This document shows positions 30,431 through 38,958 of a stretch of 64,000 bases of DNA, one piece after another. The DNA comes from Ylistrum balloti (taxonomy: Eukaryota), in the NCBI RefSeq assembly GCF_031769215.1, contig NW_026781862.1:1054001-1118000 (forward strand). Direction: 5' to 3'. Each line of letters opens with the position of its first letter. The stretch's first letter is position 1. The notes beneath the pieces were generated by a model, which saw only the letters and a program-made list of their open reading frames with translations, was not told the DNA's origin and ran no database searches. The position numbers and the translations under genes were made by a program.

Positions 30431-32753
30431 TACGGAGTGCATGGCCCCTACTGGTACTTTAGTCATGACTCCCTGTGTTAACCTGTTGCTCTACTTTCTT
30501 CCATAAATGTTCCTTTTCTTGTGGCACAACATATTCACTGTTTCAACATTGCCAAATTATAAACATTTTTTTCCAATGTATGTCAAAGTTTGGAGGTCTT
30601 CAGTTTACTCATAGTAATTTTATTGGGACGCAAATTATGTTTTTTATTGCTTTTAATATCTTGTCATCTGACTGACTGTAACCTCACCAAATGTTTCCTT
30701 GTAAGTGCAATATAATGCCATGTAATGTTGAAATATGTTTTTGATACAGTGCTGTGCACTTTAAAATAATTTAATCAGAGCTAGCTGTATCTTTCATTCT
30801 GTCAATTAATTACTGTACATTATATGTAATGTTTAGATTACCGTCACCCAGGGATGGTTAAACAGTGGGTTTTATATGTTATATAGGTGTTTGTAGATGC
30901 CAGAGCTACTGTATGTAATTCTGTAATAACACATTCACCCATAATTCTTTTGGTTATGGTGTAATTGACAATTTTACCAACAAAGAATTTGAATTTGAAG
31001 GCAAGTAAAATTAACAATTAGAAAATAGATAGTTGTCCAGCTCATGTAATTTTGTCTTCTAGTTAGCAGTAGTTGATAAACAATGCAGGTAGTAAGGTAA
31101 AAATATAATAAAAATGAAATAATGTCCATTGTATCTGTCTCATATGTTTTAATGTATTTTACCTGGAAGGGATTTAACTTTGATATGAACTTTTTATATC
31201 TGTCAATGCATTTAAAATGATATTTGTGAGATGTTGGCTTTAGACATCTATACTGAAAATTACTGACCAGAGACCTGTTCCATTTTTATACAATAACACA
31301 TGATTTTGTTCTGTTTGAGATTTTCTTATTTCTTGTTTTTTTACTTAGTTTTGTAATAACAATTAACTCTTTGTAGTAATAAACTGTTGATGTGATTGGC
31401 TTTTGTGATGTTCTGATTTACCAAAGCTTAATGTGACTAAATCATAGTAGGTTTACTGGTTCATTCGTCTGGCAATTATTTCATCATACACCCCTGATAC
31501 TGGAATCAGCTTGCCTGTCTGTCAGTAGAAAATATTTGTGTGGATAACTCCTCCTACACTACTGGATCGATTTCCGTAAAACTACACAGGAATGTTGGGG
31601 ACCATGTGTAAACCACATACTGAAGGTGTGATCTTATATTACACTGTAATACAGGTTATGTGTCTTATGATATTTAAGGTACACTAACAGAAAAAAACCC
31701 ACTAACGAATAAATTCTTCGTTTCCACCCCCCCCCCCCACCCGAGAAGGAAAATTGGAGTACAGGTGGTATTCAATTTTTCACGATACTAGTATTAATTG
31801 ATATAAAAAATGAACCGTCTATGTAATATATGTAATATGTCATCCACATTTTGTTTTGGATTTTTATGTAGTTGGTATTATAAAAATGTACGATTAGAAC
31901 GTAATGTCCGTGAGCATATTGACACAGATGTAGAATGTCTTAGTTTTCCCCATTGTAGGTAATTGGTTTCATAGGTAAACTTCCACTTGTTGACCTTAAA
32001 AACGGCTAATGTTCGAAATATTTTGACCTACATATGTATGTTACTTGTAGCTTTGACCAAGTGAGTTTCTGATTATACAAAACACACACACAAGTAAAAA
32101 CACCTTTCAATACAAATTTAGGGTTGGACACATTGGTGCTTAATAACGGAGACAGTTACAGTTATTTGCTTTGATAAAAGTTCATCGAATTTTCAACAAA
32201 ATCACGGTGATGCTAGTGTGTTCCTAGAAATAATGCGATGGGTAATTGTGAATGGACGTGTGATAACTAAACCATTTTCTCTCTGTGATCGTGTTACATG
32301 TAGTCATGTAATCTAGGAATTTACTAATGCCGTCTTTAGTCACGAGTCCAGTCCCTTCACGACCCAACAAAAAGAGGCCTTGGTGGCCATGATCTCCAAA
32401 AAACGATGGAATTCCATGAATTATTGTAGGATTTTTTTTCTACGCTTTTCTTCGCCCTCGATACGTTTTATCACATTCTGTAACGATTTGTTACGAAGTC
32501 AGCACGACCCTGGTCTGATTTCATCACGTTCTCTTACGATTATCACGATAGACTCGCACTTTCTGTCACGTTCCATAAGGCTCTCTGTCGATCTTCAACG
32601 TTCATCGAATTCTGTTGAAATTTAGAACGACTTAGGAATACAATTTTAGCAAGATTGCAAGACTCCTTATATTAGTGTTAGGTATCGTATTATGTCCCTA
32701 TATACCTGGACTGTATGTATTAACCGTCGTTAATCATGTTATCTTTAAATAAG

Positions 32754-32887
32754 ATGCCCTGAAGGTTAAGATAATTCATCCGGAGAATGATGATCTCGCC
32801 TTCCTATATACAACCATCGTGACGGACGGACAGGACGGAAACAGCGACACACCGTCGTCTAATGTGTGTGTTTTCGCGGGAAGACAG
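32754..32887 (+). pseudogene. Isolated inverted copy of racemase exon 3 from a diverged paralog
   Basis: Translates DALKVKIIHPENDDLAFLYTTIVTDGQDGNSDTPSSNVCVFAGRQ versus DALKAQLKLTHPDSDDLAFLYGTIITDGQDGQADIPSTHVCVFAEKQ (31/45 aligned residues identical by hand). The AG acceptor is retained, but the donor position reads CT. No companion exons found on this strand. Confidence 0.85.
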
Positions 32888-33477
32888 CTATTAACTCGTT
32901 GTAACACAAACCAGATTGAAAATATAGTGTATATAATAGCTGGTATATCTGATTCATGATTTAATCTTTATTGTATGTCATTTATAGTACCCCAGAATGT
33001 ATTTTTGAAAAATCCAAAAGTCACCTATGGTCTGTACTATGACCTATATGTATTTTATGATTCTTGTCATGGGTGTGAACCAGGGTGCACATCTTACCCC
33101 AAAACTTGTTCCCAAAAACCTAAAATAGATAATTGAGTTGGGTAAAACCCTATTAATTAAAGTCTGCCGCATGCTTTGAACTCGAATATCAAGCTAAGTA
33201 TTACACATATAAATAGTAATGAAAGTTTAACTGGGACATTTTTTATTACTGTGTCCATATGCTACATCGTGCATCAGAGCAATCTATGACTGTTTCTGTT
33301 TCTGTTTCTGTGTTGGAGACTGTTCCCGACAATTTTACAACCATGTACATAAACTTGCTTACATTCAATTCGCTTTACAAGCCCAATACATGTACCAAGC
33401 TCGTCTGTCAATACACTCATACTAATAACAAGATTTGTAAATCTCCGGAAACTTGTGATTGTCGCTAAACCGTTCAA

Positions 33478-34399
33478 GATGTCTCGCTGGAAGTGGTCTG
33501 TTAGATCAGAGATGTCTCGCTGGGAGTTGTCTGATAGATTAGAGATATCTCGCTGAGAGTTGTCTGATAGATAAGAGATGTCTCGCTTGGAGTTGTCTGA
33601 TAGATCAGAGATAACGCGCTGGGAGTGGTCTGATAGATCAGAGATGTCTCGCTGGGAGTGGTCTGATAGATCAGAGATGTCTCGCTTGGAGTGGTCTGAT
33701 AGATCAGAGATGTCTCGCTGGGAGTGATCTGATAGATCAGAGATGTCTCGCTGGGAGTGGTCTGATAGATAAGAGATGTCTCGCTGGGAGTGGTCGGATA
33801 GATCAGAGATGTCTCGCTGGGAGTGGTCTGATAGATCAGAGATGTCTCGCTGGGAGTGGTCTGATAGATCAGAGATGTCTCGCTGGGAGTTGTCTGATAG
33901 ATCAGAGATGTCTCGCTGGGAGTGGTCTGATAGATCAGAGATGTCTCGCTGGGAGTGGTCTGATAGATCAGAGATGTCTCGCTGGGAGTGGTCTGATAGA
34001 TCAGAGATGTCTCGCTGGGAGTGGTCTGATAGATCAGAGATGTCTCGCTGGGAGTGGTCTGATAGATCAGAGATGTCTCGCTGGGAGTGGTCTGATAGAT
34101 CAGAGATGTCTCGCTGGGAGTAGTCTGATAGATAAGAGATGTCTCGCTGGGAGTGGTCTGATAGATCAGAGATGTCTCGCTGGGAGTAGTCTGATAGATC
34201 AGAGATGTCTCGCTGGGAGTGGTCGGATAGATCAGAGATGTCTCGCTGGGAGTGGTCCGATAGATCAGAGATGTCTCCCTGGGAGTAATCTGATAGATCA
34301 GAGATAACGCGTTGGGAGTGGTCTGATAGATCAGAGATGTCTCGCTGGGAGTGGTCTGATAGATCAGAGATGTCTCGCTGGGAGTTGTCTGATAGATCA
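33478..34399. repeat. Minisatellite, 33-bp unit (GATAGATCAGAGATGTCTCGCTGGGAGTGGTCT), about 28 copies
   Basis: Directly visible; starts about 300 bp downstream of the racemase stop codon. Confidence 0.97.
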
Positions 34400-34706: not shown

Positions 34707-37700
34707 TTACAAAAGGAAACCTCGCCCGATGACGTCATCCTCCTCTAAAGAAAATTCTGAAGAACCACAATAGTACCCATTTCCGGAAACTTCTACTATG
34801 ACCGCTTTATGTCCACCACACGTCACTTCCTGTACCGCTTTGGCCTTGAACTCGGATTTGATATGACTCCTGAAGCTCCTGGACTGGCCTAGTTTGACAT
34901 AACCTTTGTGGTGCAGAAGTGCCACCCTGGCGGTGGTACCGGATCCACACGGAGATCTGTCAAACTGAAAGAAATACGATGAAATTAGATGTTGTCGACT
35001 GTTTGAGGATTTGCCAAACTCCGTTTATTCGACTGGTAGGTTTTATTGATATTTATGATGCTCTTGACTTCAGTCAAAAGTGGTTTTAATTAGCCAAGAG
35101 ATGCTGCACGATGAAAGTAGTGGCACAAAGAAATCTTACCTGTTTTTCCGCAAACACACAAACATGTGTTGACGGGATATCTGCTTGTCCGTCCTGTCCG
35201 TCTGTAATAATGGTTCCATACAGAAAGGCCAAGTCGTCACTGTCCGGATGGGTTAGCTTGAGTTGTGCCTTTAGGGCGTCTGTAAGGAGGTTAATTGTTA
35301 AGAACACTACTTAATTAAAATACATGCAATACACTTAAAATCAACTTGTAATCAGGGGCGGATACAGGAATTTAAGTTAGGGGGGGGGGCGTTATAATTA
35401 ACTTACAATTGTCAAATTAGGCCCCCAGCGGGAGGGCAGAGCCCTCTGCCAGCGAAATTATGGAAAATGGTTTAAACAGGTTTAAACCTCCCAAAAAACC
35501 GTTAGGAAATGACTGGTTTTAGGGACTTGAGGAGGCGTTGTTTCGAAAAAATACATATATAGGAAAACTAAAAAAGTAAGGAGTAAGAAAAGCTACTAAT
35601 GAGCATGTCATTAGACATTATTAATAAGCGTTGTGATATATGTTTTTGTATTTGCACTTGTATTTGCGTCAATGTGCCTGGCTGCCTGTATGAAGTTATT
35701 AATGCTCTGTTATTTCTATAATATATACAAATGTAATACCCTTTAAACTTCTGGATAGACGGACAAATAAGGTGAATTTCACATAAGGAAACCGTTAACT
35801 TACGGAAAGCTATGAACACAACAAAGAAAAGACTTCAAAATTTGAATGACAAAGAAATGTCGTTTTTGGGCTATGTATTTCAAGAATTACATGTATTTTA
35901 AATTTTTAAATGCAACACACGCCAACACTAACACTCTTTATGTGCAAAGCCGGAAAAGTGTTACCAATTTGAACTAGAATTTGAAAATTCATGTCTTTTC
36001 TGGAGGTTCTCTAGGCAGTTAAAATTAGTTTGAAATTTTAACCTATTTCCCAAAATTTGCCACCGCTGCGCCAAAATACATGCCGGCCATTACGGGTGAT
36101 CGAATTTTCGTTAAAATGAAAGAAAATTGTTTTAAGAAATTTGTAGGCTTCAACAGCTGTTTTGTTGAATGCATTTTATAGTACACATGTTTCAATATAT
36201 CCAAACAGTTTTTAGTTCAAAATTGCAAAATGAAATTGTAATCGAAGATCGTTTCTTAAGTGCGCCATAACCGGTGACACAAGGCTACTACAAAAGTGTG
36301 TATATCATCCACCGCGGGGGCGATGGGAGGGATGCTGCAAGGCCTGCTTGTCTACAGTTCATGTGACAGTTAAAGAAATTATTTGGCATAAATACTTACT
36401 CTCGCCTTTTAAAAAAACACAATTTTCTTTTGAAACATATTCGAGATACTGTACCGTCGTTACAGTTTCATACTATGTCAACAATGACACATTTTGCTCT
36501 AATATGGCCTTCATTTTCGAAAGAGTTCCTATAATCGCGATAACTCTTTCTGTCGTTATGTGATCAACTATAATAAAGTTACTGTATACTTGAAAATTAG
36601 CCCAACTTAAGTCATCTATAGCTGTTTAGAACAGTGATAGTCATAACATAAGACCAAGACCATCCAGTATAATTCGTAACTCACCCTTACTCTGCCAATT
36701 TTAGGGGGGGCGTGCGCCCCCCACCCCCCCCTCAAAATCCGCCCCTGGTAATCAAAGGGAAATGTTTGTATGCCGGAGTTTTACATTTTTTATAAAAGAA
36801 GAAAGTGAAAAAATATCTGAATACTTCATATTGCGACATGATTTAAATTCATGACCTGTCCGGGAGAGGTATTGATCAACAAGTATCTACCTGACCTGTC
36901 ATATAATTGTATGTAATTATTCTGATAGGGTACGTGTCTTGTTTATCTAATCCTGCCTGGTATTTCACACTGTCTACAGCTCTCTTGTCGCTCATGGGTC
37001 TATGTCCGTGTAATTTCCTTTCTTTTGTGAGATTTATGAAAGAGTATCTGATAACTTCGCTTTTTCTACTTCTTAGTTTGTTCGCTGCTTTCCGGAAGAC
37101 CTCTTCCTTTCTCAAAGAAATATTCTTAGTTGTACTTAATATTTAGAAAGTAAATAAACCCTGTACCACACTTATCTATAATGAATTTTAAAATTTATAT
37201 CAACCACGATAAAATCGAACATCTATGCAACGTGCGCATGCGCACAGAAGTGCGATAGCTTATTTCGTCCAGTTTTCCTATCATACATACATCGTGCAGA
37301 TCTTATACACATTTTGTAACGTTGAGCGATTCTGCAACTGTATGTTTCATAGTCCCTGGTTACTAATGTACGTGATCTTTTGTTTCTTTGGTAACAGACA
37401 TGTACTTGTAATCTGTTTCCCCGGTAACACATATCCCTACTAACGCAACACACGTCCCTGGTAACACGCGTGTCTGGTAATATGTGCCCCTAGCAACCCA
37501 TTTTCCCTTCCTAGCAAATCATGGCCTGCTAACAGGTGTCCGTGGCAAGCATGGAAACGAGTGAGCTTGTTCTCTGGGAACACTTGTGAAATTTGCTTTT
37601 TCTTACATACTGCCTTGATTTTTTTCGATATGCATTTTTTGTTTACGGAAATCCCCAAAAAATGTACCGTGTATCCTTGGAATACTTGTTCCCCGTAGTA

Positions 37701-38622
37701 TCTGCCCTGGTGGCACGTATTCCAGGAGAAACTTTACCTGTCGTGGCCGCTGCTGCACGTCTGATGACGTCTGGGGCAACACCCTCCAATCGGAAGCTGT
37801 ACTGACAGTCAGGCACTAAGGCGAAGAAGGCACCTCCGTACACGATGTCAACTACCACATGACCATACCCGGGAACATCCACTGACACATCTAAACCACA
37901 GGGGTACTGATATAAACAAATTGATTGCTTTTGCAATTACTAGAATTTACCAAAGTCATTCTGCAGGAAGCGAATACTGCCCAGCTATCTACATTATCCT
38001 TGTACTGATACATACAAAATGTGCCAAGATAATCATATCAAACTTCTTATATACTTTGAACAACAATTGCTAGTAAATGTTATCAATATTTCTCCTATAA
38101 ATAGAATGTTTCTGAAGTGTTTACCTATATATCAATGACCACATTATTACCTGTTGCGAAGACGAAAGCCGGAACACTGTTAAATCGGACATATCCGGTC
38201 TTGCCATTCTTATACTCCACGAATGTCTCCACTAATCCACATGGACACTGGATCGCCACTCGAGTTTCTGGACTGGAAAGGTTCCGGACTAGTCCCGAAT
38301 CTACAGCGTACCGTCCAAGGGAGATAATCGCGTGACCACACATGGTACTATAACCTGCATTATGTATAAACATGATGGCCATGTCTGCCTCCTTGTTATC
38401 CGGCTCTACCAATACCGCACCAAACATGTCAAGATGGCCGCGAGGTTCGCTCATCAGCAACTTTCTGTAAGGATCGAGATGTTCCCGAGTGTAGCGGATT
38501 TTTTCAAGTAAAGTGTCTCCCCGAGGGGAGGGAAAACCGGACTCGATTACCCTCAACGGTTCTCCGCTCGTATGCATCTCCCTGGTCTTAATGACAACAT
38601 TGTTCGGTATTGGCTTCGCCAT
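34707..38622 (-). CDS. L3HYPDH: Proline racemase family protein (L3HYPDH/C14orf149-like scaffold with Cys95/Cys261 catalytic pair), 340 aa
   Basis: Exons 38622-38151, 37890-37738, 35279-35140, 34964-34707; GT-AG, phases 1/1/0, 1023 nt total. Family motifs: MHTSGEPLRV, EPRGHLDMFGA, YSTMCGH, QCPCGLV, DIVYGGAFFA, LAFLYGTI, DRSPCGSGTTARVA, GFLL-stop. The symbol is the nearest animal family name; the activity probably differs (see findings). Confidence 0.95.
35353..36747. mobile_element. Non-autonomous DNA transposon (MITE-like, probably with nested inserts) in racemase intron 2
   Basis: Terminal inverted repeats CAGGGGCGGAT (from 35353) and ATCCGCCCCTG (ending 36747), flanked by direct repeats GTAAT at 35348-35352 and 36748-36752. 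No transposase ORF. Confidence 0.75.
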
Positions 38623-38758
38623 TGCTCTCTGGAAAATCTACACACCTTTGTACTTTTCGTGACCTAAGTAAGGCGATAACCTATTAAAATCCTTGCAGTT
38701 GTTGTCGTATGTATGATAGCGTGACGATACATAGAAACGTGTAGAAGACAAGTAACAT

Positions 38759-38958
38759 AGCCGGGACACTGTTAAATCGGATTTTTTCGACCTTACAGTC
38801 CTTATACTCCACGAAAGTCTCCACTAGTCCACATGGACACTGGATTGCCACTCGAGTTTCCGGACTGGTCCCGAATCTATGGCATACCGTTCAAGGGAGA
38901 TAATTACGTGGTCACACATGTGACTGTAGCCTGCATTACGTGTAAACATGGTGGCTAT
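38759..38958 (-). pseudogene. Frameshifted partial duplicate of racemase exon 1
   Basis: Aligns directly with about 38168-38385. Translates ...NAGYSHMCDHVIISLERYAIDSGPV, then a 16-nt deletion (frameshift), then ETRVAIQCPCGLVETFVEYKDCKVEKIRFNSVPA. MCGH is changed to MCDH. Confidence 0.9.

Follow-up and report, generated by a model that had tools for sequence, protein, structure and literature searches.

The 64,000-nucleotide stretch of the scallop Ylistrum balloti genome analysed here (RefSeq assembly GCF_031769215.1, contig NW_026781862.1, positions 1,054,001 to 1,118,000 of the forward strand; hereafter "the window", whose positions are used throughout) carries on its minus strand, at 38622-34707, a gene of the L3HYPDH lineage that encodes a cysteine at each of the two catalytic positions of this enzyme family. 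It contains four exons separated by introns of 260, 2458 and 175 nt; all exon borders are canonical GT..AG, the spliced coding sequence is 1023 nt (340 amino acids and a stop codon), and an in-frame TAG lies five codons 5' of the ATG. A preliminary description made from the DNA letters alone had claimed an intact, intron-containing gene with codons for the catalytic residues Cys95 and Cys261 (at 38340-38338 and, as TGT, at 34949-34947, respectively) and a phenylalanine, Phe251, six residues ahead of the aspartate of the DRSP motif, and all of this is correct. It had also predicted that automated annotation would label the gene a dehydratase; the NCBI model P0165, named [quoted passage not shown], matches the spliced product with 100% identity across all 340 amino acids, so the existing annotation does call the gene a dehydratase. 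Its exons and the codons of interest are the following:

38151 to 38622, minus strand: exon 1, amino acids 1-157 plus 1 nt, with DMFG (Phe67), STMCGH (Cys95) and the CPCG pair (Cys126/Cys128); PF05544 match of 146.8 bits; aligns with residues 36-190 of human L3HYPDH (7QPO).
37738 to 37890, minus strand: exon 2, amino acids 158-208, with YGGAFFAL including Phe180.
35140 to 35279, minus strand: exon 3, amino acids 209-255, with FLYGT (Tyr229) and CVFAEK (Phe251).
34707 to 34964, minus strand: exon 4, amino acids 256-340 and stop, with DRSPCGSGTTARVA including Cys261, Ser263 and Thr265.
38338 to 38340, minus strand: TGT codon of Cys95, the first catalytic cysteine, in STMCGH; invariant in a 50-sequence alignment.
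34947 to 34949, minus strand: TGT codon of Cys261, the second catalytic position, in DRSPCGSGTTARVA; Thr in characterised dehydratases.
38422 to 38424, minus strand: TTT codon of Phe67 (site 1), Tyr in dehydratases and Phe in proline racemases.
37823 to 37825, minus strand: TTC codon of Phe180, in the column of the ligand-binding Tyr192 of human L3HYPDH; Phe in TcPRAC and AsProR.
35152 to 35154, minus strand: TTT codon of Phe251 (site 5); Asp257 lies six residues on.
34935 to 34937, minus strand: codon of Thr265, Val in dehydratases.

The window has no runs of N, and over 9,916 bases it does not differ from scaffold JAUZWB010001297.1 (GCA_031769215.1), whose annotation gives the gene identical limits. 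The confirmation of the TGT codons in reads that the preliminary description had proposed is partial: neither cysteine codon is among the differences listed for the contigs of run X1, which cover exon 4 (record 1, 34780-35183), and two of the four record-1 mismatches are not itemised. X1 is a DNA run, since its contigs span introns. Cys261 is encoded by TGT in both close paralogues and is kept in every scallop relative, which rules out a sequencing slip. Exon 1 (38269-38557) is also covered by a second X1 contig set of partial depth with about ten differences that leave the Cys95 codon untouched; as it was placed at 90% likeness, it probably represents the paralogue P0172 or another allele.

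Membership in the proline racemase superfamily is clear. Pfam PF05544 (Pro_racemase) matches exons 1, 2 and 4 with 146.8, 33.2 and 82.2 bits (cut-off 27), both superfamily motifs, MCGH and DRSPxGxG, are present, and every residue that is invariant in the 50-sequence alignment is kept. An AlphaFold2 (AF2) model made from this alignment has a mean predicted local distance difference test score (pLDDT) of 93.3, and Foldseek aligns it with a template modelling (TM) score of 0.93 to the T. litoralis dehydratase 6R76 and of about 0.90 to the racemase TcPRAC (1W61); the fold is the same as that of the dehydratase structures, with TM scores of 0.87-0.93. The best match among the proteins of the PDB is human L3HYPDH (7QPO; E 2e-114, about 50% identity), followed by 6R76 and then by the proline racemases (ProR) of Acetoanaerobium sticklandii (AsProR, 7PB3) and T. 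litoralis (TlProR, 6J7C) and by TcPRAC, with the 4-hydroxyproline epimerases the most distant. The NCBIfam dehydratase model NF045511 gives 321 bits (cut-off 540), the ProR model NF010576 266 bits (cut-off 556) and the three 4-hydroxyproline epimerase (4HypE) models 221, 136 and 134 bits (cut-offs 376, 450 and 442). A fish L3HYPDH with a Cys/Thr pair (itself auto-annotated) also falls below the NF045511 cut-off, at 363 bits, because that model was built for prokaryotes; these equivalog cut-offs were reached by no animal protein tested, and we dropped them as a means of discrimination.

The active-site columns, in scallop numbering, were read from pairwise alignments with the solved enzymes:

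Column 67 (site 1): Phe in the scallop protein; Tyr in human L3HYPDH and the T. litoralis dehydratase; Phe in AsProR, TlProR and TcPRAC.
Column 180: Phe in the scallop protein; Tyr in human L3HYPDH and the T. litoralis dehydratase; Phe in AsProR, Tyr in TlProR, Phe in TcPRAC; Phe in the 4-hydroxyproline epimerases (GGNWFF).
Column 251 (site 5): Phe in the scallop protein, human L3HYPDH and the T. litoralis dehydratase; Phe in AsProR, Trp in TlProR, Phe in TcPRAC; Tyr in the paralogue P0172.
Column 261: Cys in the scallop protein; Thr in human L3HYPDH and the T. litoralis dehydratase; Cys in AsProR, TlProR and TcPRAC.
Column 263: Ser in the scallop protein and human L3HYPDH; Thr in the T. litoralis dehydratase, AsProR, TlProR and TcPRAC.
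Column 265: Thr in the scallop protein; Val in human L3HYPDH and the T. litoralis dehydratase; Thr in AsProR, Ser in TlProR, Thr in TcPRAC.

Four of these residues, Phe67, Phe180, Cys261 and Thr265, are informative departures from the dehydratase state, and all four are in the direction of the racemases. The preliminary description had set the second cysteine against a threonine in human L3HYPDH (DRSPTGSG), which the 7QPO structure confirms, and the fit that it reported to the racemase PRAC signature DRSPCGxGxxAxxA holds as well. Its claim of phenylalanine at both specificity positions stands only in part: Phe67 is indeed racemase-like, and Phe at site 1 may be restricted to ProR and ProR-like enzymes (PMC4364671), whereas Phe251, though present, is shared with human L3HYPDH and the T. 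litoralis dehydratase and was rejected as a marker, so that only site 1 of the two discriminates a racemase from a type-I dehydratase. As judged from the alignments, two changes that the preliminary description lacks, Tyr180 to Phe and Val265 to Thr, are more telling; the human counterpart of the former, Tyr192, is among the ligand-binding residues (PMC9309405).

Compared with human L3HYPDH, the scallop protein belongs to the same clade and has the same first cysteine, Met94, His97, CPCG cysteines, Tyr229, Phe251, DRSP and Ser263, but it has Cys261 in place of Thr273, Phe67 in place of Tyr76, Phe180 in place of Tyr192 and Thr265 in place of Val. What it has in common with TcPRAC and AsProR is the Cys/Cys pair, the PRAC signature, Thr265 and Phe at 67, 180 and 251; it differs from them in being only 31-35% identical, in lying outside the ProR clade (100/100), and in the pocket motifs, where the racemases have LNMCGH, a different loop at 227-231 (site 4) and GTGT with Thr263, and the scallop protein has STMCGH, FLYGT and GSGT with Ser263, so that only the last Thr agrees. 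TlProR, a bifunctional proline racemase and hydroxyproline epimerase (HypE) in which one pocket accepts proline, 4-hydroxyproline (4-Hyp) and 3-hydroxyproline (3-Hyp), also has Cys/Cys and Phe at site 1, but its column 180 is Tyr and its site 5 is Trp, both of them Phe in the scallop protein, and the two proteins are about 32% identical.

These residues bear on three other activities that the protein might have. A 4-hydroxyproline 2-epimerase would agree with the Cys/Cys pair and with Phe in column 180, which the solved 4-Hyp epimerases share, but it is quite improbable: the residues typical of HypE are Val or Ser at site 1, His at site 4 and Cys or Tyr at site 5 (PMC4364671), none of which is present in the scallop protein, where sites 1 and 5 are both Phe and site 4 lacks His, its scores with the 4HypE models do not exceed 221 bits against cut-offs of at least 376, and the solved 4HypEs are its most distant PDB relatives. 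Retention of the ancestral trans-3-hydroxyproline dehydratase activity is a less remote alternative that we nevertheless consider unlikely. Placement in the L3HYPDH clade, a dehydratase model as the best NCBIfam match and the in vitro epimerase/dehydratase promiscuity documented in the superfamily are all in keeping with it, and no Ylistrum copy with a Cys/Thr pair is present among the best 120 relatives, so some copy may still need to clear 3-Hyp. All characterised type-I dehydratases are Cys/Thr, however, the equivalents of the human ligand-binding Tyr192 and of Tyr76 are both replaced, and if any scallop copy keeps this role, P0178, which has Tyr, Cys, Tyr and Cys in columns 67, 95, 180 and 261 (the Y/C/Y/C type), is the likelier keeper. 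The Cys/Thr pair and pocket tyrosines that define a type-I dehydratase at the residue level are, on its predicted sequence, lacking from the protein studied here.

The most serious competitor is a trans-3-hydroxy-L-proline 2-epimerase, which would interconvert trans-3-hydroxy-L-proline and cis-3-hydroxy-D-proline and draw its substrate from collagen-like proteins. Such an enzyme would be the natural counterpart of human L3HYPDH T273C, for which 3-Hyp epimerase activity is reported in the passage of PMC3958920 that quotes Visser 2012; that single change puts a Cys at the second position of the same scaffold, and the scallop protein has it naturally, together with three more changes in the pocket that are missing from the mutant. 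The 50-57% identity to true dehydratases and the retention of the STMCGH, FLYGT and Ser263 parts of the pocket agree with this alternative, and for the ancestral Y/C/Y/C type of molluscs, exemplified by P0178 in the same genome, it is the natural interpretation. For the gene in the window we think it distinctly less probable than proline racemisation, as the tyrosine hydroxyls at 67 and 180 are both lost and site 5 is Phe. Replacement of Trp by Phe at this site in TlProR (W241F) lowered kcat/Km for 3-Hyp 430-fold and left proline unaffected, and many hydroxyproline epimerases have Tyr there (PMC4364671); the sister copy P0172, with Tyr180 and Tyr251, looks like a better hydroxyproline candidate.

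The preliminary description had allowed that a Cys/Cys pair might be known from a few invertebrate homologues, but it proves to be far more widespread. Our sample of 192 sequences was picked by similarity to queries of the F/C type: 189 are nearly full-length and were drawn from the closest relatives of two queries, and three are ProR-like outgroup sequences. The second catalytic position is Thr in 143 of these, 141 of them with the full Tyr67/Cys95/Tyr180/Thr261/Val265 pattern, and Cys in 47; Phe67 was found in none of the 143 Cys/Thr sequences. Cys/Cys is the usual state in the sampled bivalves and in most of the sampled gastropods, and it is also present in two amphioxus proteins, a sea cucumber (holothurian) and six of six sampled elasmobranchs. 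The full set of Phe67, Phe180, Cys261 and Thr265 is confined, within the sampled animal clade, to the scallop gene, its paralogue P0167 and a Ruditapes protein, with three of the four in a Mytilus protein; the same substitutions have recurred independently in clams and mussels.

Two further observations concern the second catalytic position in other animals. The elasmobranch L3HYPDH orthologues with Cys are P0336, P0290, P0314, P0329, P0344 and P0320 (from sharks, rays, a skate and a sawfish), and the bony fishes and amphibians that were checked individually have Thr; the elasmobranch "dehydratase" may, by its residues, be an epimerase. In the abalones, Haliotis asinina (P0175) has Cys and Haliotis cracherodii (P0174) has Thr in column 261 of proteins that are otherwise very close (branch lengths 0.08 and 0.06), which would reflect either a recent switch of the catalytic pair or unsampled paralogues.

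The alignment and phylogeny called for in the preliminary description uphold the assignment to the L3HYPDH lineage. In a maximum-likelihood tree of 50 sequences with ProR-like sequences as the outgroup, the scallop gene lies within a mollusc L3HYPDH clade (99/99) and, inside it, within a scallop clade (100/100), and the ProR-like sequences, which are 33-35% identical to the scallop protein, are split from the animal L3HYPDH clade at 100/100. This deep nesting together with the low identity to ProR-like proteins indicates that the resemblance to racemases is convergent. Horizontal transfer from a bacterial ProR was considered and rejected because of the introns, the species-tree order within Mollusca and the same low identity. 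The scallop clade has two parts: subclade A contains Mizuhopecten and Argopecten sequences and Ylistrum P0178, all of the Tyr/Cys/Tyr/Cys/Val type, and subclade B (100/99) contains Argopecten P0170 and Ylistrum P0167, P0165 and P0172, all four with Phe67, Cys261 and Thr265. The sequence is best described as a protein of the dehydratase lineage, outside the ProR subfamily, whose site has become racemase-like by convergence.

Gains of the pocket residues were counted by parsimony on a FastTree phylogeny of the 192 sequences from which the trait columns had been removed, and were compared with branch lengths by a binomial test. Branches with Cys261 make up 35% of the tree length, yet all eight gains of Phe67 (p = 2e-4), all eight of Thr265 (p = 2e-4) and all three of Phe180 (p = 0.04) fall on them, in a test that is rough and was applied to a query-biased sample. 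A stricter independent-pairs test, applied to Cys261 with Phe67 and to Phe67 with Thr265, gave no significant result, as informative pairs were too few. The qualitative pattern is clear, and suggests that once the second cysteine was in place the pocket tyrosines were free, or were driven, to become Phe.

The two close paralogues, P0172 and P0167, are found close to the end of another scaffold, JAUZWB010000158.1 (L001 10001-12746, L002 10001-14249), about 14 kb from each other and oppositely oriented, and share the exon plan 472/153/140/258 with the gene in the window. When their coding sequences were rebuilt from these loci, the ratio of non-synonymous to synonymous divergence (dN/dS) of the scallop gene was 0.27-0.37 against P0172 (dS about 0.2) and 0.13-0.18 against P0167, with dS of 0.2-0.7 across both comparisons; the gene is therefore under constraint, and all three copies are under purifying selection. 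That the gene is a decaying or unexpressed duplicate whose odd residues reflect relaxed constraint is accordingly the least probable of the explanations considered, and we give it very little credence. Degenerate gene fragments do adjoin it, and the sole public run found with this stretch is of DNA, but its frame is intact, its splice sites are canonical, the invariant residues of the family are all kept, and clams and mussels acquired the same substitutions on their own. The gene and P0172 differ at 39 residues, including pocket positions 180 and 251 (Phe/Phe here, Tyr/Tyr in P0172). Since P0172 has Tyr180 and Tyr251, and Tyr at site 5 is frequent among hydroxyproline epimerases, this suggests that the two recent copies may have divided proline and hydroxyproline between them.

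We tentatively favour the view that this is a functional, lineage-specific L3HYPDH paralogue whose product is a two-base, stereo-inverting enzyme that would act preferentially on proline. It probably switches proline-type amino acids between their L and D forms, and a dehydratase active site would, with the same reserve, have been remodelled toward the proline-racemase type. The L- or D-imino acid would be bound between the two domains, with Cys95 and Cys261 on opposite faces; one thiolate would take the alpha-proton and the opposite thiol would reprotonate from the other face. The outcome would be inversion at C-alpha by a cofactor-independent 1,1-proton transfer, not the syn-elimination of water that Cys/Thr enzymes perform. 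Proline is ranked first among the possible substrates because two tyrosine hydroxyls have been lost and because the Phe67/Phe180/Phe251 triad is that of the strict racemases TcPRAC and AsProR, although a degree of activity as a 3- or 4-hydroxyproline epimerase may persist. In approximate order of decreasing probability, the residues point to proline as a plausible first choice, trans-3-Hyp epimerisation at appreciably longer odds, a retained dehydratase some way behind that, 4-Hyp epimerisation as a slight prospect and, last, no function.

Several points weigh against a proline racemase. The rest of the pocket is dehydratase-like (STMCGH in place of LNMCGH, the FLYGT loop and Ser263), function in this superfamily does not follow from the catalytic pair alone, as Ser/Cys enzymes epimerise and Ser/Thr enzymes dehydrate (PMC4113996), and the NCBIfam dehydratase model outscores the racemase model (321 and 266 bits) with neither cut-off reached. 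To these may be added the roughness of the residue-gain test, the null result with independent pairs and, with regard to expression, the fact that X1 is a DNA run; in the literature searched, outside which Visser 2012 fell, there is no characterisation of any animal Cys/Cys member.

A broader and more speculative proposal, to which we give less weight than to the proline preference of this one protein, is that bivalves have repeatedly turned L3HYPDH duplicates into genuine proline racemases, with the scallop gene and P0172 as a freshly split proline/hydroxyproline pair. Scallops, venerid clams and mussels would each have gone this way on their own, first exchanging Thr for Cys at the second catalytic position and then acquiring Tyr67Phe, Tyr180Phe and Val265Thr.

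The surroundings of the gene contain a degenerate exon copy, an exon-like fragment and repetitive DNA:

38747 to 38958, minus strand: degenerate, frameshifted copy of the 3' half of exon 1 (amino acids 81-156), directly upstream of the start codon; 68-73% amino acid identity, 78% DNA identity to 38167-38382, with MCDH for MCGH.
32753 to 32890, plus strand (opposite to the gene): lone exon-3-like fragment, 65% amino acid and 73% nucleotide identity, with no other exons detected nearby.
33477 to 34399: satellite of 28 copies of a 33-nt unit (94% matches), just downstream of the gene.
35348 to 36747: 1.4-kb insertion in intron 2 with perfect 11-nt terminal inverted repeats (CAGGGGCGGAT) and GTAAT on each flank.

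The exon-3-like fragment is probably a relic of another copy, and the satellite gives rise to long spurious open reading frames on both strands. An X1 contig joins 35347 to 36748 and so is without the intron 2 insertion, which resembles a non-autonomous DNA transposon that is polymorphic for its presence.

Among eukaryotes, the proline racemases known to us are those of trypanosomes, and no animal-encoded proline racemase or hydroxyproline epimerase was found in the literature searched. D-proline of unexplained origin has been detected in a land snail, in traces, and reported from polychaetes, and an enantiomer method has been validated on bivalve samples; these reports raise the question of its source but do not implicate this gene. 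If the scallop protein does racemise proline, D-proline would have its first animal source, and if the reading of bivalve racemases is true, animals would have an endogenous source of this amino acid. Dozens of Cys/Cys proteins of molluscs, amphioxus, a sea cucumber, and sharks and rays have been automatically named "dehydratase", and this name, which rests on the Cys/Thr human enzyme, may be wrong for all of them. Should the scallop protein indeed racemise proline, it would also be a clean natural case in which four identifiable residues take a dehydratase back to a racemase, with paralogues that sample the intermediate states.

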